DNA from: Octopus sinensis
Lineage: Eukaryota
DNA: 12,048 bases
Direction of reading: 5' to 3'
Assembly (NCBI RefSeq): GCF_006345805.1
Contig: NW_021826819.1
Location: 1-12,048, forward strand
Part shown: positions 1-12,048 of the stretch, piece after piece
How positions within the stretch are numbered: the stretch's first letter is position 1
Layout: each line of letters opens with the position of its first letter
Made by a program: the position numbers and the translations under genes
Notes under the pieces: model-generated
Databases searched by the model: none
Told to the model about the DNA's origin: nothing
What the model saw: only the letters and a program-made list of their open reading frames with translations

Positions 1-20
1 GATATATATATATATATATA

Positions 21-104
21 AAATGGCGGTGCCCCAGCAAATGGTGGTGCCCCAGCATGGCCACAGCTCATGATCTGAAACTGGAATCAATCAATCAATC
101 AATC
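21..104 (+). mobile_element. SINE 3' end fragment with (ATCA)n tail
   Basis: GGCGGTGCCCCAGCATGGCCACAGCTCATGATCTGAAAC matches the 3' end of the full SINE at 5521-5560 (GGCGGTGCTCCAGCATGGCCGCAGTCAAATGACTGAAAC). It is followed by ATCA repeats. Confidence 0.8.
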
Positions 105-105
105 A

Positions 106-192
106 TGTATAATGGATAAATTAAGAAATGGAGTCAAACGCAGTTGTTACACCTGTATTTGACTCCATTTCTTAATTTATCCATGTTATACA
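106..192. repeat. Near-perfect inverted repeat (hairpin or tiny MITE)
   Basis: 106-138 pairs with 158-192 over 33 bp with one 2-nt bulge. Inner CAG/CTG pairs close a 9-nt loop. Confidence 0.9.
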
Positions 193-324
193 AAAACATT
201 TCAGTTAACCCTGGAATTTCTACCTTTATAAGTAGGCTGTAATATCTTTGGCACTTATGTGAATTTTTGCTACCCTGGTAACTATTTATTTATTTTTTCT
301 TTGTTATTTGGACGCATTGAAAAA

Positions 325-326
325 AT

Positions 327-410
<84 letters not shown>

Positions 411-425
411 TGAGAAAGAGAGAGA
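325..425. repeat. Compound (TA)n-(GA)n microsatellite
   Basis: Read directly from the sequence. Confidence 0.97.
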
Positions 426-1420
426 TACAGCCAAATGGCATTAGTTGTTAAAACATCACAACTTTGTCTTTCATCCTTTCTGGCTCTATGGAATACTAGT
501 CTCATGCTGGACTCGATTCTGTTCTCTCTTACTCCCTCTCTCTCTTTCTCTTCCTTCCTCTTTCTTCCCAGAAGAAATTGGCTGTGGTCAGACCTGGTGA
601 GCAACGGGATCCACCAGGTCTAAAAGTGTCTAAGATATGCTGTATTTCACAACAGCACTCCTACGACTGCATCACGTAGTTAACGGACTAGAGCAAGATA
701 GTGCTTATGCACAAGAAACTACCATAAATTTTATAGCTCAATTGACACAATACCATATAAAATCTTGCACACAGTTTGTAATCAGCTATTACAAATGCAG
801 AGAGCAAAAAACTTTCGAAAATTGAAGATAAACAATATCATTGATGATTAAAATATCAATTTCCTACACCTGTTTCAATAATCCTCACATATCCTCATAA
901 CTGTACAATTATATAACAATATAAGTATACAGGACATAAGAATCTTATTTTCAAGGATCACTTTTTTAATATGAATTCCAAACTATAACAAATTCTATAT
1001 AGAAAGAGGAAGATGCAAGAGAAAGAAATAAGAAAGAAGAGAAAGGAAGTAATGATTTAGTGACAAAGAGTAAATAGAAAGGTAGAAAGATGTTAACAAT
1101 GGAGATGGAAAGAAGAGATTAGGGCAGTAAAATAGTAATAAAATCAAGAAAAGAAATATGGAATTCATAAAAACTAAATAAATAATAACAAAGAAAAGTA
1201 ATAGAAAAATATAAAGTAAAATAAATTTAAAAAATATATAGTAAAAGTAATAAATCAATGAAAAACTGATATCTGAAGCAGGAAGGTTATAAATTAATTC
1301 TTGTAGCTATGCAGATAACTGCAGGTTTAGCTGGTCATACATGGCAATTTGAAGGAGAATCATGAAAGCTCTGCTGCAAAACTGGATCACAAGAGTTCAC
1401 AGATACATGTAAACATATAT

Positions 1421-1690
1421 CATCATCATCATCATCATCGTCATTATAGTTTAACGTCCATTTTTCATGCTATCATGGGTTGAACAGTTTAACATGGAGG
1501 TGGCCAGCTGGAAGCTGTCCAGACTCCAATTGTCTGTTGTGACATGGTCTCTATGTCTAGATGCCCTTCCTAATGCCAACCACTTAGCAGAGTGTACTGG
1601 GTGCCTTTTATGTGCCACCAGCATAGGTGCATTTATGCAGCACCAGCATGGGTGATTTTTCTTTATGTGGAACCAGCACCTGAAAGGACA
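1421..1690 (-). mobile_element. Retroposon (SINE or LINE-tail) fragment with (ATG)n tail
   Basis: (CAT)n at 1421-1438 is followed by GTTTAACGTCCATTTTTCATGC...GATGCCCTTCCTAATGCCAACC, a 3'-end motif I recognise from invertebrate retroposons. The family is not determined. Confidence 0.65.
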
Positions 1691-1823
1691 AGCTTGTATA
1701 TGCGGAAGACAATAGACACACATACACACACAGGACAAACATTAGATCCCTCTAAACAAATTATCTGAGCAGGTTTCTCAGTGAGAAGATGCAAGATAAG
1801 TCCCCAGAATATATATATATATA

Positions 1824-2100
1824 CTTTGGGTATAGTAGATGAGTTCAGCAAAAATTTAGATTCAGATGAATATGGTACTTAAGTTGAGGCACCAGAATTT
1901 AGTATGGTATTATCCATACAATTTCAAAGTAAGGTGATTAAAATCAAAATAAGCAACAAGGATATCCAGAGATAATGCAGTACGATCGTTTCATGTGACT
2001 CCATTTAATTGAACAATGCAATCATTACATCAAGTTAAAATGTAGAGCAATCATCAGCTGTGCAAAGGCATAGAATTTAATTAAATTAGAACAGATGGAC
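1824..2100 (-). mobile_element. Probable non-autonomous HHR-bearing repeat (Penelope pLTR/retrozyme-like)
   Basis: Non-coding segment starting beside a (TA)n run and containing the HHR motif at 1975-2064. Boundaries are approximate. Confidence 0.45.
1975..2064 (-). ncRNA. Type I hammerhead ribozyme-like motif (family A), degenerate stems
   Basis: Minus strand: UGCACAG-CUGAUGA-uugcuc...gagucacau-GAAACGAUCGUA-CUGCA. The core is intact, stem III is palindromic (ACGAUCGU) and the triplet is GUA. Stem I has a 2-nt bulge and stem II is weak. Confidence 0.65.
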
Positions 2101-2279
2101 ACATTAATATACCTAAAATCTCACAGAAGTTTAGGAGATAGACAAAGAACATATTGTCTCTACTTCAGCATAGAAGTTACTAAAATTATCAAGAAGACTC
2201 TGCCTGCCACTGATTTTTTGTCTTTATGGGGTCAGTTTTAATTTATAGACTAGTTTATCAAATCCCTTGTATATTTAAG

Positions 2280-2648
2280 GCTGAGAGGATAGAGGGCAGT
2301 ATTTGTTAGGGGTAGGGCTGAGAGAGTAGACAGACATTCTAGTTGGTATAGTCATAAAAAAATCAAGATTATTATAAGCAATATCATGAGGATTAGTAAG
2401 GGAAAACTTAAAACAAGATGTTAAGGGGGTCGTCCACTAGAAGACTATCGATAATGAAGCAGGGGAAGTCTTATTGTTAAATATTTTAAACAATGTTGCT
2501 ATGTATACAGTTAAAGTTTAGGGTTATTTAAAGGATTATTAAGAAGAATATTATAAGAAATGGATAGAACTTTATGAATACTTTTGAGTATATACCAAAC
2601 TCTTACCACAATAGAAGGAGGAAAAGAAATTATCCAGAAATAGTTTAA
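2280..2648 (+). pseudogene. Decayed coding relic, copy 1 (paralogous to 3240-3520), possibly a non-LTR ORF2 C-terminus
   Basis: Translates as TRRLSIMKQG...LKFRVI*RIIKKNIIRNG*NFMNTFEYIPN...TIEGGKE.YPEIV*, with stops and frameshifts. It aligns to copy 2. Confidence 0.4.
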
Positions 2649-2687
2649 TATTTATACATATTGTATACTTAAATACTAACTCATCTG

Positions 2688-3520
2688 ATGGTATCTGTGA
2701 ATATTGATTATATATATTGGTATATACTGGTATTAATAAAGGAGTATTGGGGTAAAGGAATATGCTAATTATATATTAATAAAATTTTAATCTAAGCAGT
2801 TTTTCATAAGTAGTGAATATTACAGTATGGTTTTATATAAGTTAAGTATGAATTTATAGATACAAAAATTAGATTAATATTATAAATAAAGGTTAATTAT
2901 AAAATAATAAAGAAATGAAATAAAATAATCAAGTTAGGCAGAACAGCACAGAAAAGGAATAAAAGAGCTTAATCACTAAAACTATGATAAAGTATATGTA
3001 GCTTATTAACACCAATAGAGAAGATTTATAGAAAATGTATAATAATTCAAAATATATTAGACTAAAAATTATATATTTACTTATTTAGCTAATATCAATA
3101 AAAGACTGATGTTTGGTATCGGTTAAAGGGATATTTAAGTTATGTGACATTCATATTTTACACTAATTTTTTTAAACTAAGGGTTTTATTATAGGTTTAA
3201 GAAGTTATTATTGTTACTCCCTACATGATATTTATAGTTACTTAGTGGTACTTGTTTAGAAGGGTTATTTATACAAAGGCCTTTATAAATACTAAGACCA
3301 GGAGGATAGAGCTCTTTAAGAAAGGGATAAATCAAGTAATTTCTAAAGATCACTTCAAACAATATTGTCTTATTGTATAAAGTTAAAATTTAGGATAATC
3401 AAGAAGATTATTAAGAATGAAATTTTAACAAAAGGATATAACTTCTTAGAATATTTTGAGTACATACCAAATTTTATCACAATAGAGGGAGGAAAAGAAA
3501 ATTACAAAGAAATAGTTTAA
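2688..3520 (+). pseudogene. Decayed coding relic, copy 2, possibly an L1/Tx1-type ORF2 C-terminus
   Basis: Open frame 3347-3520 ends KLKFRIIKKIIKNEILTKGYNFLEYFEYIPNFITIEGGKENYKEIV*. Upstream, ...KCIIIQN...VWYRLKGYL loosely recalls an L1 zinc-knuckle region but carries many stops. A (TAG)n run follows the stop. Confidence 0.4.
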
Positions 3521-3528
3521 TATTTATT

Positions 3529-3570
<42 letters not shown>
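3529..3570. repeat. (TAG)14 microsatellite
   Basis: Read directly from the sequence. Confidence 0.97.
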
Positions 3571-3572
<2 letters not shown>

Positions 3573-4107
3573 CACAAAGTCCAAAATGTAACCCTGCTCA
3601 ATTCAGGTAGGACTGGATGGAAATACTAGGATCTCTGGGACAGATGAGTTGGGTGCTACACATTTGTTTACCAACAACTGTTTGAGTTTAATAAAACTTC
3701 TAAAGACATATTTACAGTTGTCTGTGACACATAATAGATTAAATTTTTGTTAATTTGTTGTACAAAATCATTGTAGGAATGATTGCTATAGAAACTGTTA
3801 AAGAAACATGTGTGAATCTAAAACAGACAAAGTGTTTGGGTTATGTGAGGTTGTATTTCAGCATTTGTTGCTTTGTTTATACAATTTCTCAATGCAAAAT
3901 CTGTTTCATGTACAGAATGTTAAAGGAAACTTTGGGAATCCCTATTGGTCATCAACCTAATTCATCTCAGTGTTTGAAACGTAAATGTACTGAAACGATT
4001 GCTTGTAATGTATATACTCTTTCTCTCCCTCTCTCTTTTCCATCTCTCACTCTCTCTACATATATATGTGTGTGTGTGTGTGTGTATTTTCATAGCATTT
4101 TTTCAAT

Positions 4108-4179
4108 GGCCTGATAACTGAAAAGATGGCGGCATGGGTTTCCGCCCCGACATCCGAAACTCAGAGTTTTATCATGGTT
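4108..4179 (+). ncRNA. Type I hammerhead-like motif (family B, left arm), core G8>A
   Basis: UGAUAA-CUGAAAA-GAUG...CAUC-C-GAAACUCAGAGUU-UUAUCA. Stem I is 6 bp, stem II is GAUG/CAUC with an inner GCGG/CCGC helix, stem III is ACU/AGU and the triplet is GUU. Confidence 0.55.
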
Positions 4180-4287
4180 ACTGAATAATTGTTGCATATT
4201 ATATTTACAGATAAATTCCTCTATTTACATAATATCGAGGTCTCTTTCATTCTTTTGTTGTCTTACCATTTTTATCAATATACAGAT

Positions 4288-4330
<43 letters not shown>

Positions 4331-4440
4331 CATATATATATTGGTAAAAACAGTAAGATAACAAAAGTAAGAAAGAGACCTCAATATTATGTAAACAGAG
4401 GAAATTTATCTGTAAAATAATATGTGACAATTATTCAATA

Positions 4441-4511
4441 GCCAAGATAAAACTCTGAGTTTCGGGTTCCGAGGTGGAAATCCACAACACCATCTCTTCG
4501 GTTATCTGGCC
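4441..4511 (-). ncRNA. Type I hammerhead-like motif (family B, right arm), core U4>C
   Basis: Minus strand: GCCA-GAUAA-CCGAAGA-GAUGG...CCC-GAAACUCAGAGUU-UUAUC-UUGGC. Stem I is conserved and stem II is degraded. Confidence 0.55.
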
Positions 4512-4835
4512 ATCTGAAAAACGCTATGAAAAAAGACCATTATACAAAAGGAATTTGCTGTGTTATAATTCCGCTACTTATATAAAAGCGCTAATCCAAT
4601 GACCTCTAATTAATATATATACATATATATATATGAGTTTAGAGGGATATCTTATCTGCGTAGATACTGTATTGGCTGTCAGTTAAGTTCCAGTTAACAG
4701 CTAACCACTTCAATCAGTATTTAATGTCTGTGTCTATTATTTGTTGCTAGTCACTCTGTGAATTCTTCCAATGGGTAATTCTGTATAGGCTTTGCTGGAC
4801 GGTAAAAATTGTCTGGAGTATATATTATTATTATT

Positions 4836-5120
4836 AATGAAGAGTATGGAGACTTGTTCATCTGCAAAATTTATTTTCTAGTTACATACAGCATATTATA
4901 ATGACCTAAACATGTTTCCACTGCACTGACTATGCACAGTTGCAGATGCAGAGGATGGCCAAATGGATGAACCCTAATGAAACTGCACCAATAATAATGC
5001 AAGGTTGTATCTGCATCCATGAGTTGTTAGTGTGGAAGAAACATGTGCAGGTCGTTATGATATGCTGTATGTAACTATAAAATAAATTTTGCAGATGAAC
5101 AAGTCTCCATTTTCTTTATT
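4836..5120. mobile_element. MITE-like fold-back element with long terminal inverted repeats
   Basis: 4846-4895 vs 5061-5110 match 49/50 as reverse complements. Imperfect pairing continues inward to about 4920/5030. The flanks are (TAT)n on the left and (AAT)n on the right. Confidence 0.8.
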
Positions 5121-5163
5121 AATAATGATAATAATAATAATAATAATAATAATATAATATATA

Positions 5164-5328
5164 GGCACAGGAGTGGCTGGGTGGTAAGTAGCTTGCTAAC
5201 CAACCACATGGTTCCAGGTTCAGTCCCACTGCGTGGCATCTTGGGCAAGTGTCTTCTGCTATAGCCCCGGGCCGACCAATGCCTTGTGAGTGGATTTGGT
5301 AGACGGAAACTGAAAGAAGACTGTCGTA

Positions 5329-5371
<43 letters not shown>

Positions 5372-5580
5372 TTGTGTGTCTGTGTTTGTCCCCCTAGCAT
5401 TGCTTGACAACCGATGCTGGTGCATTTACGTCCCCGTCACTTAGCAGTTCGGCAAAAGAGACCGATAGAATAAGTACTGGGCTTACAAAGAATAAGTCCC
5501 GGGGTTGATTTATCGACTAAAGGCGGTGCTCCAGCATGGCCGCAGTCAAATGACTGAAACAAGTAAAAGAGTAAAGAGTA
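5164..5580 (+). mobile_element. Full-length tRNA-derived SINE (Octopus-type, CORE-like centre)
   Basis: A-box-like TGGCTGGGTGGT (5174-5185), B-box GGTTCAGTCCC (5217-5227), CORE-like TTGGGCAAGTGTCTT, an internal (TA)n(TG)n run and an A-rich repeat tail. Homologous copies lie at 6500, 7151, 9676 and 11470. Confidence 0.92.
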
Positions 5581-5603
5581 TATATATATGTATGTATGTA
5601 TAT

Positions 5604-5800
5604 ATCACCATGATCACCGTGACCGACCAGGCTATCAGATGTTGCAACACATTGCTGGTCACAATGCACTTTGCATTGTTTTAGCCTTCAAATGACAACA
5701 CCCTGCTGGCTAAGCTAGCAGGCCAACAGAAGAAAGAGTGAAAGAAAGTTGTGGCAAAAGAGTACAGCAGGGATCGCCAACACCCAATACCAGAGCCACG
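5604..5800 (-). mobile_element. Fragment of a second SINE-like family
   Basis: ATCACCGTGACCGACCAGGCTATCAGATG...GCTGGCTAAGCTAGCAGGCCAACAG resembles a common cephalopod repeat (recalled). It is truncated where the HHR-bearing segment begins. Confidence 0.5.
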
Positions 5801-6159
5801 TGAGCACTGAATATGATGTCTCTGATACCGTTAGGTAGAGAGATATATTCCAGTGCCTTCGAATTTAATATTTAATAATTAATATTGGAGGAATCCCACG
5901 CTGATGAGCCGAAAATGGTCGGGTAGGTATAATTATTTATTCTTTATACCGATCTAATTCAGAAACGTGCGTACGTGGGTAACCTAATATCGATTGATTT
6001 TCGTTATTTTTCCCTTTTGCCTGCGTGGATTGTGTTCAAGTACTATGGTTTTTCTAGGAGTCCCTTTTAAAGTAGAAGGAATAGCTAAGATTTTTTGACT
6101 GCTATTTCTAAACTTCGGTATGTGGTGAAGCAAATCTTTGCTGAACCCTGATTATAAAG

Positions 6160-6160
<1 letters not shown>
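5800..6160 (+). mobile_element. Probable HHR-bearing repeat (Penelope pLTR/retrozyme-like)
   Basis: Non-coding segment containing the HHR motif at 5882-5990 and ending at a (TA)n run. Boundaries are approximate. Confidence 0.45.
5882..5990 (+). ncRNA. Type I hammerhead-like motif (family C), atypical stem II
   Basis: CCCACG(5895-5900)-CUGAUGA-54 nt-GAAACGUGCGUA-CGUGGG(5974-5979). Stem I extends past an internal loop (AUAUUGG 5882-88 / CUAAUAU 5984-90). The G10.1-C11.1 closing pair of stem II is missing. Confidence 0.62.
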
Positions 6161-6195
<35 letters not shown>

Positions 6196-6499
6196 AACAC
6201 ACATACTTAATGTGTGTGCTTTGTTTGTTCACTGTTAGGCTGTGATTTGATGCAATACAGATGATTCTCTCAAAGCAATGGGATTTAAAACACCTGAAAG
6301 TCATAGGCAAGCAAAACAACTTACCCAAATCACATCGAGGAGTGATAGACACCAATGTTTACCTATTTTTGTGGCATATCAACATCACATGTGTTTGATA
6401 AATTGCATCCAATCAGCAAACAACCAATGCTCATACATTGATTATGTGTGTTCTATAATGTTTACAATATTACACTATTTCTAATTCATAACTAAATAT

Positions 6500-6912
6500 G
6501 TTCTTTTATTCTTTTATTCTTTTCAGTCATTTGACTGTGACCATGTGGGAGCACCACCTTAAAGGTTCTTTTAATCGAAGAAATCAACCCTAGGACTTAT
6601 TCTTTGTAAGCCTAGTACTTATTCTATTGACTGTTTTGCCAAACTGCTAAGTTACAGGGTCCTAAACACACCAGCATTGTCAAGTGATGGTGGGGGAACA
6701 AACACAGACACACACATAAATGCACACACACACACATGTTTATGCAATGGGCTTCTTTCAGCTTCCATCTACCTAATACACTCACAAGGCTTTGGTTACC
6801 CTGAGGCTATAGTGACAGACACTTGCCCAATGTGCCATACAGTAGGACGGCACCTGGAACCATGTCATTGGGTTGGGAAGCAAGCTTCTTACCACACCAT
6901 TGTGCCTGTGCC
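6500..6912 (-). mobile_element. Near full-length, diverged tRNA-derived SINE (same family as 5164-5580)
   Basis: Reverse complement of the head, CORE-like region (GACACTTGCCCAA), internal (CA)n and 3' end (TTTCAGTCATTTGACTGTGACCATG). Confidence 0.9.
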
Positions 6913-6913
6913 T

Positions 6914-6957
<44 letters not shown>

Positions 6958-7150
6958 CATGCAAGGGCCAAAATTCAGCCCATTGCATGGTGAGCCTAGA
7001 ATCAACACTAGGAACAGCCAACATCCAACAGAAAGCACATTCACAAGATGAATTCATGTGTTACACTTTGCATAACTCATACCCAACACAATGAACACTT
7101 CATGAAATCACACAAACAACGCAATACATATATAAAATATATGCTACATA

Positions 7151-7335
7151 GGCGTAGGAGTGGCTGTGCGGTAAGTAGCTTGCTTACAAACCACATGGTT
7201 CCAGGTACAGTTCCACTGCATGGTATCTTGGGCAAGTGTCTTCTACTATAGCTTCGGGCCAACCAAAGCCTTGTGAATGGATTTGGTAGACGGAAACTGA
7301 AAGAAGACTGTCATATATATGTAAATATATATATG
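7151..7335 (+). mobile_element. 5' half of the tRNA-derived SINE
   Basis: GGCGTAGGAGTGGCTGTGCGGTAAG...TTGGGCAAGTGTCTT...CTGAAAGAAGACTGTC is nearly identical to 5164-5330. It is truncated at the TA run. Confidence 0.92.
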
Positions 7336-7460
7336 AGGTCAGCTTTTGCACTTCATCCTCACAGGGTTGATGAAATAAGTACCCATCAAGTACTGGGGGT
7401 CGATGTAATCAACTAATCCCCTCCCTCCAAAATTGGTTGCTTTAAGTCAAAATTTGACGC
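7336..7460 (+). mobile_element. SINE central/3' fragment (Nin/Deu-domain-like)
   Basis: CAGCTTTTGCACTTCATCCTCACAGGGTTGATGAAATAAGTACC...GGGGTCGATGTAATC. A short related piece (CTTTGTCTTTCATCCTTTC) lies near 462-481. Confidence 0.55.
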
Positions 7461-7461
7461 A

Positions 7462-7552
7462 GTTGTTGTTGCCGTTGTTGTTGTTGTTCTTCTTCTTCTC
7501 CTTTTTCTTCTTCTTCTTCTTCTTCTTCTTTTCCTCCTCCTCCTCTTCCTTC
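7462..7552. repeat. Compound (GTT)n(CTT)n(CCT)n microsatellite, probably a LINE tail
   Basis: Read directly from the sequence. It abuts the LINE remnant on the minus strand. Confidence 0.9.
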
Positions 7553-7554
7553 TA

Positions 7555-7900
7555 TTTTTCTCAAAGAAATCATTTATGTTCCTCTTGAACTCGCTTAAGT
7601 CAAAACTTTGTAAGACGAGAATTCAGGGGGTCAACGTTCTGGAGCGGGGGGGGGGGAGGAATGGGATTAGGGATAAGTAAGTGTCATGATAGGGCGGAGA
7701 AACACTTGACACGAGAAGGTAGGAGGAGAGGTTAGTGAAACGGAAAAATATCTGGGTGGGTACAAGAGAAGCATGAGGGTGGGGCAGCGGAGGGGGCCTG
7801 TGTTGGGAGGTTGGTAATGAGGTTATGAAGGTGGTGGAAGGGGTGAGTGGGTGGGTGGAATAATGAAGATCATGTGGTTGTTGTTTTTGAAAAGCAAAAT
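7555..7900 (-). mobile_element. LINE (CR1/L2/Jockey-group) ORF2 C-terminal remnant
   Basis: The frame of ORF 7623-7991 read through its stop gives HPHASLVP...YHDTYLSLIPF...SRTLTP*ILVLQSFDLSEFKRNINDFF, resembling the SRT..LWN.LP...F..SYDL..FK.N(V/I)N end of these ORF2s. A simple-repeat tail follows. Confidence 0.55.
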
Positions 7901-8060
7901 AGGCCATTGATCTCTTTATTTGGTATATATCCATATATTCATGTACACATACAGGCTCCATATGCAAATACACACACAAACACACACACAATCACATACA
8001 CTAACACAATCACATAAAAACACACACCAGTCTATACATATGTGTGTGGGTGTGTGCATG

Positions 8061-8162
<102 letters not shown>

Positions 8163-8584
8163 CATCACACAAACAAGCCTCCACAGGAATGCAACACACA
8201 TACACACACTCAATCACATACACATGCACTAACAAACCATGCAAAAAACACACCGCCTATATATATATGAGTGTGTGTGTGTATATATATGTATATATGT
8301 GCATGTAGTGTGTATGTATGTATGTATGTATGTATGTATGTGTGTATGTATATATATATATATATATATTATAATATAGGGTGGCAAGGAAAATTTTGTA
8401 GAATTTTATTGCCCACCCGGCCCAGTGGAAAAATTAAATAGTCATAGACCATTTTTAAGTTCAACGTAACAATTAAGGAACGGCCATAATAGGCCATTCA
8501 CCCACTAGAATAACAGCCAAAGCTTCTACCGCAAATAAAGATTAATTCCGTAAACGGAGAAAATAAAAAAACATTTACCCTGTA

Positions 8585-8689
8585 ATTTCTTGTACGGTAT
8601 AACATTTCATCCGCTGTTAATGGTAAACTAACATGATTAAATTAATCAAGCCAATCTTCCATAAGCCCTCGGATTCTTCAGCAAGAAAT
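8585..8689 (-). ncRNA. Type I hammerhead (family D, copy 1), stem III mutated
   Basis: AUUUCUUG-CUGAAGA-AUCCG...CGGAU-GAAAUGUUAUACCGUA-CAAGAAAU. Two substitutions break the stem III palindrome. Confidence 0.75.
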
Positions 8690-9071
8690 AGCTCAAGTTG
8701 GAACAGATATTTACACGAGGCATACCCAATCTGCCAAGTCAATATCTGACCTAAAATTTTCAAATCGTCGCACTCGCACCAAATTTATCGGCAGCAAATA
8801 AATATCAGCCGTCGATTCCATTACGGAATTAACCAAAAATTCATATTTAATCCATAATAGGGTGGCAAGGAAATTTTTGTAGAATTTTATTGCCACCAGC
8901 GGCCCAGTGGGAAAAATTAAATAGTCATAGACCATTTTTAAGTTCAACAGTAACAATTAAGGAACGGCCATAATAGGCCATTCACCCACTAGAAATAACA
9001 GCCAAAGCTTCTACCGCAAATAAAGATTAATTCCGTAAACAGGAGAAAATTAAAAAAACATTTACCCTGTA

Positions 9072-9178
9072 ATTTCTTGTACGGTATACCGTTTCATCCG
9101 CTGTTTAATGGTAAACTAACATGATTAAATTAAATCAAGCCAATCTTCCATAAGCCCTCGGATTCTTCAGCAAGAAAT
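9072..9178 (-). ncRNA. Type I hammerhead ribozyme (family D, copy 2), apparently intact
   Basis: AUUUCUUG-CUGAAGA-AUCCG-(58 nt)-CGGAU-GAAACGGUAUACCGUA-CAAGAAAU. Stem I is 8 bp, stem II is 5 bp and stem III is a perfect 12-nt palindrome. Predicted cleavage is after GUA, between 9080 and 9079. Confidence 0.87.
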
Positions 9179-9610
9179 AGCTCAAGTTGGAACAGATATT
9201 TACACGAGGCATACCCAATCTTGCCAAGTCAATATCTATATGTATATATGTATATATGTATGTATGTATGTATGTTTATATGTATGTGTATGCACCTATT
9301 TATATGTATATATGTGTATATATACAGACAAGGGAAACACAAACACACAAACACACACATAACAATACACAACAGAAGGAACTCGATATGAAAGGTAAAA
9401 CAACACCAGGGACCCCTCTTGGGGGATCCAACATTATGTCTCACTTCCTGTTCCCGTTACCAACAATAGCTATGGAGCACTACATGAACATGCATGTGCA
9501 TGTACGCATACACAAACACACATACACACACTCATCTGTGTGCATGCATGTAGCATTTGTACACATATAAGTATATTTGTGAATGTGAGGGTATATATGT
9601 AGGAGTATGA

Positions 9611-9651
<41 letters not shown>

Positions 9652-9675
9652 TGTGTGTGTATGTGTGTGTGGATA

Positions 9676-9838
9676 GTCACAGGCATGGCTGTGTTGTAAG
9701 AAGCTTGCTTCCTAACCACACAGTTCCAGGTTCAGTCCCACCGCATGGGACCCTGGGCAAGTGTCTTCTATTATAGTCTCAGGCTGACCAAAGCCCTGTG
9801 AGTGGATTTGGTTGGCAGACACTGAAAGAAGCATGTTA

Positions 9839-9883
<45 letters not shown>

Positions 9884-9980
9884 AGTACTAGGCTTACAAA
9901 GAATAAGTCCTGGAGTTGATTTGCTCGACTAAAGGCAGTGCTCCAGCATGGCCACAGTCACATGACCGAAACAAGTAAAT
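9676..9980 (+). mobile_element. tRNA-derived SINE with an internal deletion
   Basis: The head, B-box GGTTCAGTCCC, CORE-like region and 3' end are present. The ~95 bp after the (GT)n run seen in the 5164 copy are missing. Confidence 0.9.
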
Positions 9981-10072
9981 ATATATATATATATATATAT
10001 AATAACGAAATAATAAATAAAACACATGCATATATACATACATATATGTACTTACCTACATGTATATGTATA

Positions 10073-10665
10073 TATGACGCCAAAAGAATGTCGAACACAA
10101 TGAGATACGAAAACATAAAAACAGAACAATGGAAAAGGACATTTTTTTAAACAACGAAAAAACAGGGTACAAGACATACAACACAAAGAAAATTCCCCTT
10201 CTGCAGCCACCTCCATTTCGTCTACTCCACATTTCGAAGGTAAAGGCGAGACATGACTTCGGCGAAATGGTCCTTCCCGCAAAGCAAATATATATATATA
10301 AAATTTAAATAATGAGGGTGATAAATTGAATATTAATTCAATTAACATCAATTTAAAACCAGTAGCCTAGCATATAGAAAAACTGAAAATTCAGAAAAAT
10401 TGTAATACATGCGTATAAGAAGAGATAACCACTAAGTGGACATCCAGTATGTTAAAAGAAGATCACCTACGATCTAACCACACAGAAAAGAATGTTCTCT
10501 AGAGAAATTCAGCAAACACCAGAACATAGGCGGGCAAGACATGAAAATATACAAAATTAAAGAATTAATTGTAGACTGATTTCGTCATTAACGATTTTAC
10601 TTACGTAACATCATATGTGGACTCTTCAGTACGATCGTTCCAATTCAATATAATTTGGAGAACTA
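10073..10665 (-). mobile_element. Probable HHR-bearing interspersed repeat (Penelope pLTR-like)
   Basis: Non-coding segment between a TA microsatellite and the repeat near 10670, containing HHR family E. Boundaries are approximate. Confidence 0.5.
10567..10636 (-). ncRNA. Type I hammerhead ribozyme (family E), minimal stem III
   Basis: GAUCGUA-CUGAAGA-GUC...GAC-GAAAUCAGUC-UACAAUU. Stem I has 6/7 pairs and stem II has the canonical G-C closing pair, extended by a 10-bp helix with a GUAA tetraloop. The triplet is GUC. Confidence 0.75.
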
Positions 10666-10682
10666 TATACGGGTTGTCCTCA

Positions 10683-10768
10683 TAAAATTAGATGTGTGTG
10701 TAGTTCTACCGATTACATTGGGGTTATTTTCATGTAATCAGTAGAACTACAAACCCACGTTTATTTTA
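10683..10768. repeat. Inverted repeat hairpin
   Basis: 10699-10718 pairs with 10732-10751 (19/20) around a 13-nt loop, with a degenerate outer extension. Confidence 0.8.
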
Positions 10769-10941
10769 TTATATCACCATTATGTTGGTTGCGCCAGGGT
10801 TGGTAGTTTTGCAAGACTTATTCGTCTATGCTCCAAACCAGAAAACATTGAACGTTGTTTACCCAGAAGCTCTTACATAATTTCCTTCAACATGTGGTAG
10901 AATTTATCCCCTTTCATAAAAGTGGTAAATTTTGTATTTTC

Positions 10942-10943
<2 letters not shown>

Positions 10944-10995
<52 letters not shown>
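10944..10995. repeat. (TTA)n microsatellite
   Basis: Read directly from the sequence. Confidence 0.97.
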
Positions 10996-11104
10996 CATTT
11001 TGTATTATGAATTCAGAATTGATTTCCTAATTAAAGAATAAATTGTATCCCAATTGAAGAATAAATTTAATTTAGAATAACAAATTTATATATAGCATAT
11101 ATAT

Positions 11105-11345
11105 ATGTACTTGCATAGCATATGTACTTGCATAGATGTACTTGCATAGCAAGTGACCTGATCTGAGATCGTGTGCTGGAACGAAAACAATTGCAACATG
11201 GAAGGTGTTTATAAGCCATTTAAGAAACACACAAAAACCGTTAGATTCACGAAAATATTTTGACAAATTAAATTTAAATTTTGAAGTGAATCTAACGGTT
11301 TTTGTGTATTTCTTAAATGGCTTATAAACACCTTCCATGCTGCAA
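11105..11345. mobile_element. Fold-back repeat: 60-bp inverted arms and a triplicated 14-mer at the left end
   Basis: 11191-11250 vs 11286-11345 match 58/60 as reverse complements, with a 35-nt spacer. ATGTACTTGCATAG occurs at 11105, 11122 and 11136. Confidence 0.8.
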
Positions 11346-11430
11346 ATATTTTGCTTTTTTCTTCCAATATGTGAGGAGAAATTTAATTCCTGGACAATGC
11401 CGGGTGCCTCTGCTAGTATGTGTGCATGTG

Positions 11431-11469
<39 letters not shown>

Positions 11470-11474
<5 letters not shown>

Positions 11475-11657
11475 ACTTGTTTTAGTCATTACACTGCAGC
11501 CATGCTGGGGCACCGCCTTGAAGAACTTTAGTCGGACGAATTGACACCCAGTACTTATTCTGTCGGTCTCCTTTGCCGAACTGCTATGTTACGGGGACAT
11601 AAACACACCAACACAAGTTGTCAAGCGGTACTGGACTACAAAGACAAATACACACAC

Positions 11658-11690
<33 letters not shown>
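11470..11690 (-). mobile_element. 3' half of the tRNA-derived SINE
   Basis: TTTTACTTGTTTTAGTCATT...GCCATGCTGGGGCACCGCC...AGTACTTATTC...TTTGCCGAACTGCT is the reverse complement of 5390-5570. Confidence 0.88.
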
Positions 11691-11694
<4 letters not shown>

Positions 11695-11738
11695 ACACCA
11701 CACACACACCATGCGCAACAGAGAGATTGAGAGATTAC

Positions 11739-11822
11739 CAGGATGGGTTATAGGGCATTTTGAGCTCCGAATCGTAACACTTTTTTCTTTCCCCCGTCAC
11801 TGCTGTTGTCGTGCTTTTAATT
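11739..11822 (-). CDS. Candidate 84-nt internal exon, product unknown
   Basis: Minus strand: TTCTTCAGCGTTTTTCAATTGCAG|exon|GTAATC. One frame is open (IKSTTTAVTGERKKCYDSELKMPYNPS) and the exon is symmetric phase 2-2. The sequence is non-repetitive and retains CpG. No homologue recognised. Confidence 0.35.
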
Positions 11823-12048
11823 CTGCAATTGAAAAACGCTGAAGAATTTGATACTGAGTCAGTTATAAAGCATACGGTAACAAACAAACACGCGCACGCG
11901 CACGCACACACGGCCATGTGTGTGTGTATACATAAATTTCTATCTATATATATATATAATATACTCACACACGCATCCATGCACACATGTGTTTGTGTTC
12001 GTATTAAACTTACCGAATGGCATTTGTTAAATGAAGTGTGTAAACCAT

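Follow-up and report, generated by a model that had tools for sequence, protein, structure and literature searches.

A 12,048-nucleotide stretch of the Octopus sinensis genome (contig NW_021826819.1, positions 1 to 12,048; hereafter the window, meaning the whole stretch of DNA that was analyzed) carries a short tandem repeat with a type I hammerhead ribozyme motif in each of its two units. We consider this locus to be probably a retrozyme-type hammerhead repeat of the kind represented by metazoan retrozymes without long terminal repeats (non-LTR retrozymes) and by hammerhead satellites. The presence of two hammerheads in a 487-bp tandem repeat is the context that points to such an element, and the locus shares with retrozymes and satellites the type I topology, the occurrence of one hammerhead per short, AT-rich, non-coding head-to-tail unit, a palindromic helix III, and a structured monomer. 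A first-pass annotation of this DNA had treated one of the two motifs, referred to below as hammerhead B, as a stand-alone ribozyme, which is not consistent with its position inside the repeat. The features of hammerhead B are as follows.

9072..9178, minus strand: hammerhead B, complete type I motif (sequence, descriptor scan with shuffles, fold, sub-threshold Rfam match)
9081..9092, minus strand: stem III of hammerhead B, perfect 12-nt palindrome ACGGUAUACCGU, from A15.1 to U16.1 (sequence, predicted pairing energies)
9101..9158, minus strand: 58-nt insert in stem II, predicted long imperfect hairpin extending helix II (minimum-energy fold; copy A forms the same hairpin)

On the minus strand, stem I of hammerhead B consists of a 5′ strand AUUUCUUG (9178-9171) paired with a 3′ strand CAAGAAAU (9079-9072), which together form an uninterrupted helix of 8 bp without an internal loop. 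The core segment C3-A9 follows as CUGAAGA (9170-9164) and leads into a 5-bp stem II, in which AUCCG (9163-9159) pairs with CGGAU (9100-9096) and the closing pair is A10.1-U11.1 (A9163 with U9096) instead of G-C. The segment G12-A14 is GAA (9095-9093). Beyond the stem III palindrome, A9080 occupies position H17, so that the cleavage triplet reads GUA and the predicted scissile bond lies between 9080 and 9079. All nucleotides expected of a type I core are in place (C3 U4 G5 A6 N7 G8 A9, G12 A13 A14, A15.1-U16.1, and an H17 other than G). They are surrounded by three helices of 8, 5 (plus the extension) and 4 bp, of which helix I is open and holds both the 5′ and the 3′ end. The first-pass annotation had listed the full set of core nucleotides, the 8-bp stem I, the 5-bp stem II with A-U replacing G-C at its closure, and the perfect 12-nt palindrome of stem III, and the minus-strand sequence bears out each of these elements. 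The new 5′ end that it predicted at 9079 likewise agrees with the scissile bond read from the sequence. Its description of a 58-nt stem II loop was correct with regard to the length, but not with regard to an open loop. In the predicted fold of the 107-nt motif, stem II runs into internal loops and a long hairpin, such that helix II is continued past an internal loop by the imperfectly paired 58-nt insert. The two copies of the motif differ in this helix II arm by two indels (at 9134 and 9106), both at predicted unpaired positions.

Matches to the hammerhead consensus could in principle arise by chance within AT-rich repetitive DNA, and the sub-threshold Rfam score of hammerhead B (E = 0.3 over the window) would suit this explanation. 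A type I descriptor, which demanded the core boxes, a nested arrangement of the three stems, and a nucleotide other than G after U16.1, was applied to both strands of the window and of 1000 dinucleotide-preserving shuffles. With stems I, II and III of at least 5, 4 and 3 bp, respectively, it matched twice in the window and in none of the 1000 shuffles. This effectively refutes chance. After relaxation to 4, 3 and 2 bp, matches were obtained in 10 of the 1000 shuffles (0.011 per shuffled window). Moreover, the 107-nt RNA has its energy minimum (−31.8 kcal/mol, z = −4.14) in precisely the three-way junction of a hammerhead, a stability that none of 200 shuffles reached, and the motif is kept in both repeat units with an identical core and identical stems I and II. 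A chance origin is thus so improbable that it can be set aside for practical purposes, and hammerhead B is, judged by its sequence and predicted fold, a complete type I motif on the minus strand. A third, loose core match at about 10629..10580 on the minus strand (CUGAAGA, a 3-bp "stem II", then GAAA) fails in stems I and III and was rejected as a hammerhead.

The repeat that contains hammerhead B has a period of ~487 bp and extends over 1.78 head-to-tail units from 8362 to 9234, as found by repeat finding, pairwise alignment, blastn and nhmmer.

8746..9234, minus strand: full repeat unit B (489 bp), the upstream unit in minus-strand orientation (self-alignment, blastn, nhmmer)
8362..8745, minus strand: partial repeat unit A, ~0.78 unit, downstream on the minus strand, truncated at a (TA)n microsatellite (alignment, blastn, nhmmer)
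8585..8689, minus strand: hammerhead A, second copy of the motif (descriptor scan, alignment, fold)

The starts of the repeat copies are spaced by 483-489 bp, and no further copies or fragments of the 487-bp unit exist within the window. Hammerhead A passed the type I descriptor, and its predicted cleavage site between 8593 and 8592 is located 487 nt from that of hammerhead B. Two consecutive units, each with a complete type I hammerhead (9178..9072 and 8689..8585), are thus arranged head to tail, an arrangement used as a criterion for metazoan non-LTR retrozymes (10.64898/2026.07.22.740005). The ranking of hammerhead B as the best hammerhead candidate in the window, proposed in the first-pass annotation, is confirmed in the sense that it is the better of only two, the other copy having two substitutions in stem III. 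Units A and B are 94.9% identical if gaps are counted, and their 21 differing columns comprise 5 substitutions and 16 indels. The indel columns are 1-2 nt long, mostly fall into A/T runs, and are possibly long-read assembly noise. Two of the five substitutions are located at the array edge and three inside the unit. Two of the latter three strike the 5′ arm of the stem III palindrome of copy A (8604 and 8602); one is at a CpG. The unit has a G+C content of 35.9%, and its longest open reading frame (ORF; 81 aa) had no homologue in a protein search. By inspection, the array ends are not of the TG...CA type, and neither a tRNA-complementary site nor a polypurine tract (PPT) adjoins the repeat ends. 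A plant-type LTR retrozyme, which would be read here as repeat, 100-nt internal segment and repeat, was rejected on the grounds of the type I hammerheads, the low G+C content, the array ends, and the lack of a primer-binding site (PBS) or PPT beside the repeats.

The first-pass annotation had also proposed that stem III can either fold in cis or pair between two molecules, and the predicted energies support both modes. In cis, stem III of copy B forms 4 bp closed by a UAUA loop (−2.9 kcal/mol), whereas that of copy A forms no stable fold on its own (0 kcal/mol). Two palindromes of copy B paired as a 12-bp helix reach a predicted −18.8 kcal/mol, and the heteroduplex of copies B and A reaches −10.3 kcal/mol. 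When the full motifs were co-folded in pairs, the classical double hammerhead was obtained, with a predicted gain over two monomers of −13.0 kcal/mol for B with B and of −9.5 kcal/mol for B with A. According to these predictions, pairing with the intact unit of the same transcript could make up for the damage in copy A. Cleavage at both hammerheads would release the following RNA.

8593..9079, minus strand: predicted 487-nt RNA freed by cleavage at both hammerheads, candidate circular RNA (linear and circular folds)

The linear fold of this RNA has a predicted energy of −142.3 kcal/mol (z = −5.5) and the circular fold one of −136.6 kcal/mol, with 62% of the bases paired and hammerhead stem I not formed. 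The predicted monomer is thus highly self-paired, which is a criterion for metazoan non-LTR retrozymes. An 8-bp GC-rich minus-strand hairpin (GAAUGGCC-UAUUAU-GGCCGUUC), followed by a U-rich stretch, is conserved in each unit (8962-8983 and 8478-8499). It belongs to the stable 487-nt RNA fold and was picked up by a terminator-like scan.

On this basis, we propose the following mechanism for the retrozyme-type repeat. A minus-strand transcript running through the array would fold one hammerhead per unit. A single hammerhead could cleave on its own, given the stable 4-bp hairpin that stem III of copy B is predicted to form. Alternatively, the palindromic stems III of two units or two transcripts would pair as one 12-bp helix in a double hammerhead, which would also rescue the damaged copy A. 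Cleavage at both sites would free the 487-nt RNA, which a host RtcB-type tRNA ligase could circularize. The circle could then be copied by a reverse transcriptase (RT) provided in trans, most likely by a Penelope-like element, which would yield tandem copies of more than unit length at new sites. The ends of the array fall away from the cleavage sites and therefore fit the copying of a circular or more-than-unit-length template, not of a linear monomer.

Several results weigh against assigning the locus to the retrozymes and hammerhead satellites. The Rfam model Hammerhead_1 (RF00163) aligns to hammerhead B over its full length (model positions 1-45), but scores only 21.4 bits compared with a gathering threshold of 34, and an Rfam scan of the window at the gathering thresholds gave no match. 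In E-value reporting, the E-value of this alignment was 0.3 over the window and 0.023 when a 911-nt stretch was scanned. Hammerhead A was not reported by Rfam with E up to 10. A10.1-U11.1 stands where a strongly conserved, though not strictly indispensable, G-C pair is expected, and the canonical tertiary contact between loops 1 and 2, on which activity at physiological Mg2+ depends, is not evident, stem I being a plain 8-bp helix without a loop 1. Stem III of hammerhead A reads AUGUUAUACCGU and is weakened by its two substitutions. In the fold predicted for the 873-nt array transcript, the stems II and the stem III of copy B are present, whereas in either copy the AU-rich stem I loses out to competing pairings. 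The array comprises only 1.78 units with two near-identical copies, which precludes a covariation test, and the 487-bp period was not called by Tandem Repeats Finder itself. Finally, no relatives outside the window were found by a pattern scan of metagenome and viral sequences, by protein searches, or by literature searches with sequence strings. The literature search with exact strings returned only unrelated primer matches, and the supplement of PMC7229834 contains no sequence matching the unit. The pattern CTGAAGAATCCG-N(45-75)-CGGATGAAA matched 27 metagenome or viral loci, none of which has stems I or III; most are GC-rich and microbial-looking, and we regard them as chance matches.

The Rfam alignment shows two departures from the consensus, namely the long insertion in loop 2 and the A/U at G10.1/C11.1, and the shortfall in score is plausibly explained by the 58-nt insertion and the A-U pair. 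Cricket hammerheads are known to have compensatory changes at the 10.1-11.1 pair (PMC2837043). Hence, hammerhead B is real by sequence and fold, yet atypical enough to escape curated detection. The models of the amniote intronic hammerheads (HH9/HH10) and of the discontinuous Clec2 hammerhead gave no match with E up to 10 after clan competition. Other sub-threshold Rfam "matches" in the window, to microRNA (miRNA) families, are hairpins of microsatellites or inverted repeats and were disregarded. With respect to the long transcript, forcing the inter-unit helix III in the 873-nt fold costs only 1.8 kcal/mol. As stem I is outcompeted while this helix is cheap, the thermodynamic prediction is compatible with both an active and an inactive fold of a long transcript. 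Folding during transcription would favor the local hammerhead fold.

Some of these observations also suit a decayed relic, that is, a repeat that derives from a hammerhead-bearing element and whose present copy cleaves too slowly, if at all, to be useful in cells. We regard this as a serious, though less likely, possibility. It would account for the replacement of G10.1-C11.1, a highly conserved pair (PMC4209133), for the unrecognizable contact between loops 1 and 2, and for the loss of stem I from the minimum-energy fold of a long transcript. Furthermore, the two stem III substitutions in copy A make monomer release dependent on a weakened site, the short array is incomplete at either end, and only low in vitro activity is displayed by the minimal hammerheads that Penelope-like elements carry (PMC4209133). 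However, the three helices and each of the 11 invariant core positions are intact in copy B, and the presence of only three substitutions between the copies within the unit suggests a young insertion. The helix III of copy A could be restored by pairing with copy B, as the predicted energy of the heteroduplex given above indicates. In mussel retrozymes, the hammerheads are likewise devoid of the archetypal tertiary-contact nucleotides, yet they cleave at ~0.1 per min and give abundant circles (PMC7229834). We judge the case for efficient cleavage by this particular copy to be roughly evenly balanced.

At the other extreme, the same deviations might define a distinct sub-architecture, with A10.1-U11.1, a 58-nt helix II arm replacing loop 2, no loop 1, and a 12-nt palindromic helix III. 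Such a ribozyme would perhaps act only as a double hammerhead between neighboring units, with cleavage switched on in multimers and off in the excised circle, and would represent an undescribed, possibly active cephalopod retrozyme family that makes 487-nt circular RNAs. We consider this proposal to be distinctly unlikely.

Both ends of the array adjoin microsatellites of similar composition.

8284..8369, no strand: (TATG)n/(TA)n microsatellite adjoining one array end (Tandem Repeats Finder, sequence)
9237..9321, no strand: (TATG)n/(TATA)n microsatellite adjoining the other array end (Tandem Repeats Finder, sequence)

Short-period repeats cover ~8% of the window (sum of the Tandem Repeats Finder intervals). 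At this coverage, insertion of the array into a microsatellite is suggestive of a target preference, without proving it. Penelope-like elements insert preferentially into microsatellites, (TA)n among them (PMC8557442, Craig et al. 2021), and the flanks are thus a small piece of evidence for mobilization by such elements. They also bear on the idea that the locus is the remnant of a terminal repeat (pLTR) of an autonomous Penelope-like element, from which the ORF for RT and endonuclease was deleted, and not a dedicated non-autonomous retrozyme. The pLTRs carry type I hammerheads, occur as partial tandems and favor microsatellite targets (PMC4209133, PMC8557442), and the retrozyme families of Xenopus are sister to pLTRs (10.64898/2026.07.22.740005). 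In line with this, the locus has a type I hammerhead with a palindromic 15.2-16.2 and loop 3 region suited to dimers, is a partial tandem, and is flanked by (TA)n/(TATG)n. In contrast, no trace of an RT or GIY-YIG domain was detected, there is no ORF above 81 aa between or beside the hammerheads, the 81-aa ORF has no homologue, and Pfam matched none of the ten longest stop-free, non-repetitive stretches in the window. Nor does the hammerhead follow the minimal architecture of pLTRs, in which helix III is absent or 1 bp long, A9 is followed by an extra nucleotide, and helices II and I have 6-8 and 4-5 bp, respectively (PMC4209133). At the octopus locus, helix III is a stable 4-bp helix, helix I has 8 bp, no unpaired nucleotide separates A9 from 10.1, and the 10.1-11.1 pair is A-U where the Penelope-like motifs conserve G-C. 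We therefore regard a pLTR remnant as unlikely, with the qualification that the retrozyme and pLTR-remnant explanations largely merge in light of 10.64898/2026.07.22.740005.

The first-pass annotation had further suggested that hammerhead B would cut intronic pre-mRNA if the host transcript is on the minus strand. This would make it a solitary, host-domesticated intronic hammerhead like those of amniotes. The ribozyme does lie on the minus strand, and ~44% of the Xenopus retrozyme copies overlap introns, so that such a location is conceivable (10.64898/2026.07.22.740005). However, the motif is not solitary, but duplicated in tandem with the whole 487-bp unit, the Rfam families of intronic hammerheads remained unmatched, and retrozymes are depleted in introns compared with intergenic DNA (10.64898/2026.07.22.740005). 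Moreover, no coding sequence, exon or host intron signal is recognizable anywhere in the window, which also has no Pfam domain or convincing ORF, and neither a tRNA nor the tRNA head of a short interspersed element (SINE) was found in it by ARAGORN. The suggested cutting of intronic pre-mRNA is thus speculation, because the window offers no support for a host transcript or an exon, and we consider a domesticated intronic ribozyme to be very unlikely. In a less likely variant of the sub-architecture considered above, this copy would have been co-opted for the processing of a host transcript.

The remainder of the window is rich in repeats. Microsatellites are very dense, with 25 Tandem Repeats Finder rows in 12 kb that mainly represent (TA)n, (TG)n, (TATG)n and (GA)n. 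The compound microsatellites (AT)n(AG)n / (TC)n(TA)n at 325-425 and 8067-8162 are mutual reverse complements located 7.6 kb apart (up to 94% over 83 nt), and may be a coincidence between microsatellites or the ends of a larger structure. A SINE-like interspersed repeat occurs in direct orientation at 5136-5347, 7123-7334 and 9648-9859 and inverted at 6704-6872, with tails at 5469-5567 and 9880-9979 and a fragment at 34-88. A (TA)n(TG)n tract lies within this repeat, its tail, which includes GGTGCTCCAGCATGGCCGCAGTC, is conserved, and a peptide derived from it had no database homologue. These SINE-like repeats (e.g. 5136-5567 and 9648-9979) presumably resemble a very abundant octopod SINE. A long, near-perfect hairpin or inverted repeat at 11169-11373 gave a sub-threshold match to MIR841 (66 bits compared with a threshold of 200) and one to MIR6027 on the other strand, and is most likely an inverted repeat resembling a miniature inverted-repeat transposable element (MITE) and not a miRNA gene. 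Two further inverted-repeat pairs, 4823-4950/5006-5133 and 4082-4205/4414-4537, have arms of 124-128 nt that are 80-84% complementary and 55 and 208 nt apart, respectively. Possibly, these regions (4823-5133 and 4082-4537) are foldback elements or MITEs. Finally, a direct repeat of ~150 bp at 2502-2655 and 3374-3527 (spacing 872 bp, 77-85% identity) is AT-rich, unrelated to the array, and without a hammerhead core.

The locus is an ordinary further example of the known retrozyme layout, and its unusual details define no new class. Ribozyme specialists may nevertheless be interested in the A-U pair that replaces G10.1-C11.1, in the long arm of helix II, and in the lengths of the palindrome (12 nt) and the unit (487 nt). 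If the repeat is active, it would add another invertebrate lineage, a cephalopod mollusc, to those making small circular RNAs by hammerhead self-cleavage. It would also be a natural test case for the replaceability of the 10.1-11.1 pair and of the contact between loops 1 and 2, and for the question of whether cleavage becomes dependent on inter-unit pairing when helix III is a long palindrome. What is presently understood of animal hammerheads remains unchanged. The main value of the analysis is that the motif is now placed in its repeat context, which lowers the special claim of a live intronic ribozyme.

A close match in overall layout is offered by the metazoan non-LTR retrozymes, which are tandem repeats of 150-450 bp occurring as dimers to multimers, with a G+C content below 45-50% and without LTR, PBS or PPT (PMC7229834, Cervera and de la Pena 2020). 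In the coral Acropora, the mussel Mytilus and the axolotl, they are transcribed, self-cleaved and ligated by RtcB, giving rise to linear RNAs and abundant circular RNAs, and Penelope-like elements were proposed as their mobilizing partner (PMC7229834). Like these elements, the octopus locus has one type I hammerhead per short head-to-tail unit, a low G+C content and no ORF, lacks LTR, PBS and PPT, and has a monomer RNA predicted to be strongly self-paired and a predicted unit-length release product with ends suited to RtcB. Its unit of 487 bp is at the upper edge of the usual size range, but lies inside the 51-972 bp reported for retrozyme consensus lengths in a 2026 preprint (10.64898/2026.07.22.740005). 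It further differs from metazoan retrozymes by the 58-nt hairpin extension of helix II, by A-U at 10.1-11.1 and by the lack of a recognizable loop 1/loop 2 contact. In most type I hammerheads of metazoans, helix III is short, its loop is palindromic, and the ribozyme acts as a dimer (PMC4209133, Cervera and de la Pena 2014). Helix III of the octopus motif is longer than in the metazoan retrozymes, consists of 4 bp plus a tetraloop, and is palindromic over the full 12 nt. In cephalopods, 235 Hammerhead_1 loci and Penelope elements were listed in the giant squid genome paper (PMC6962438).

Other known systems share some aspects with the locus. In plant LTR retrozymes, two direct-repeat hammerheads also flank a non-coding segment, which is converted by self-cleavage and circularization to a non-coding circular RNA (PMC4918200). 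However, these elements contain type III hammerheads, have a G+C content >55%, and possess LTRs with PBS, PPT and 4-bp target duplications, none of which was seen at the octopus locus (PMC4918200). The HH9/HH10 and Clec2 hammerheads are single motifs in a host intron or 3′ untranslated region, unlike the octopus motif, which is duplicated together with its repeat and lies in a region without a gene signal. Among the hammerhead satellites, pDo500 of Dolichopoda cave crickets is a close analogue in unit size, with units of ~500 bp for which both single and double hammerhead modes were proposed (PMC2837043). Satellite 2 of newts, as cited in the cricket study, has units of ~330 bp with one hammerhead each (Epstein and Gall 1987, cited in PMC2837043). 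The octopus locus shares with both satellites the presence of one hammerhead per tandem unit, and in those systems long transcripts are processed to monomers. Both form large arrays that are conserved across species and have demonstrated activity, whereas the octopus locus is an array of 1.78 units with predicted cleavage. The cricket double hammerhead shares stems I and II between the copies, while the octopus double hammerhead, like that of the newt, would share helix III.

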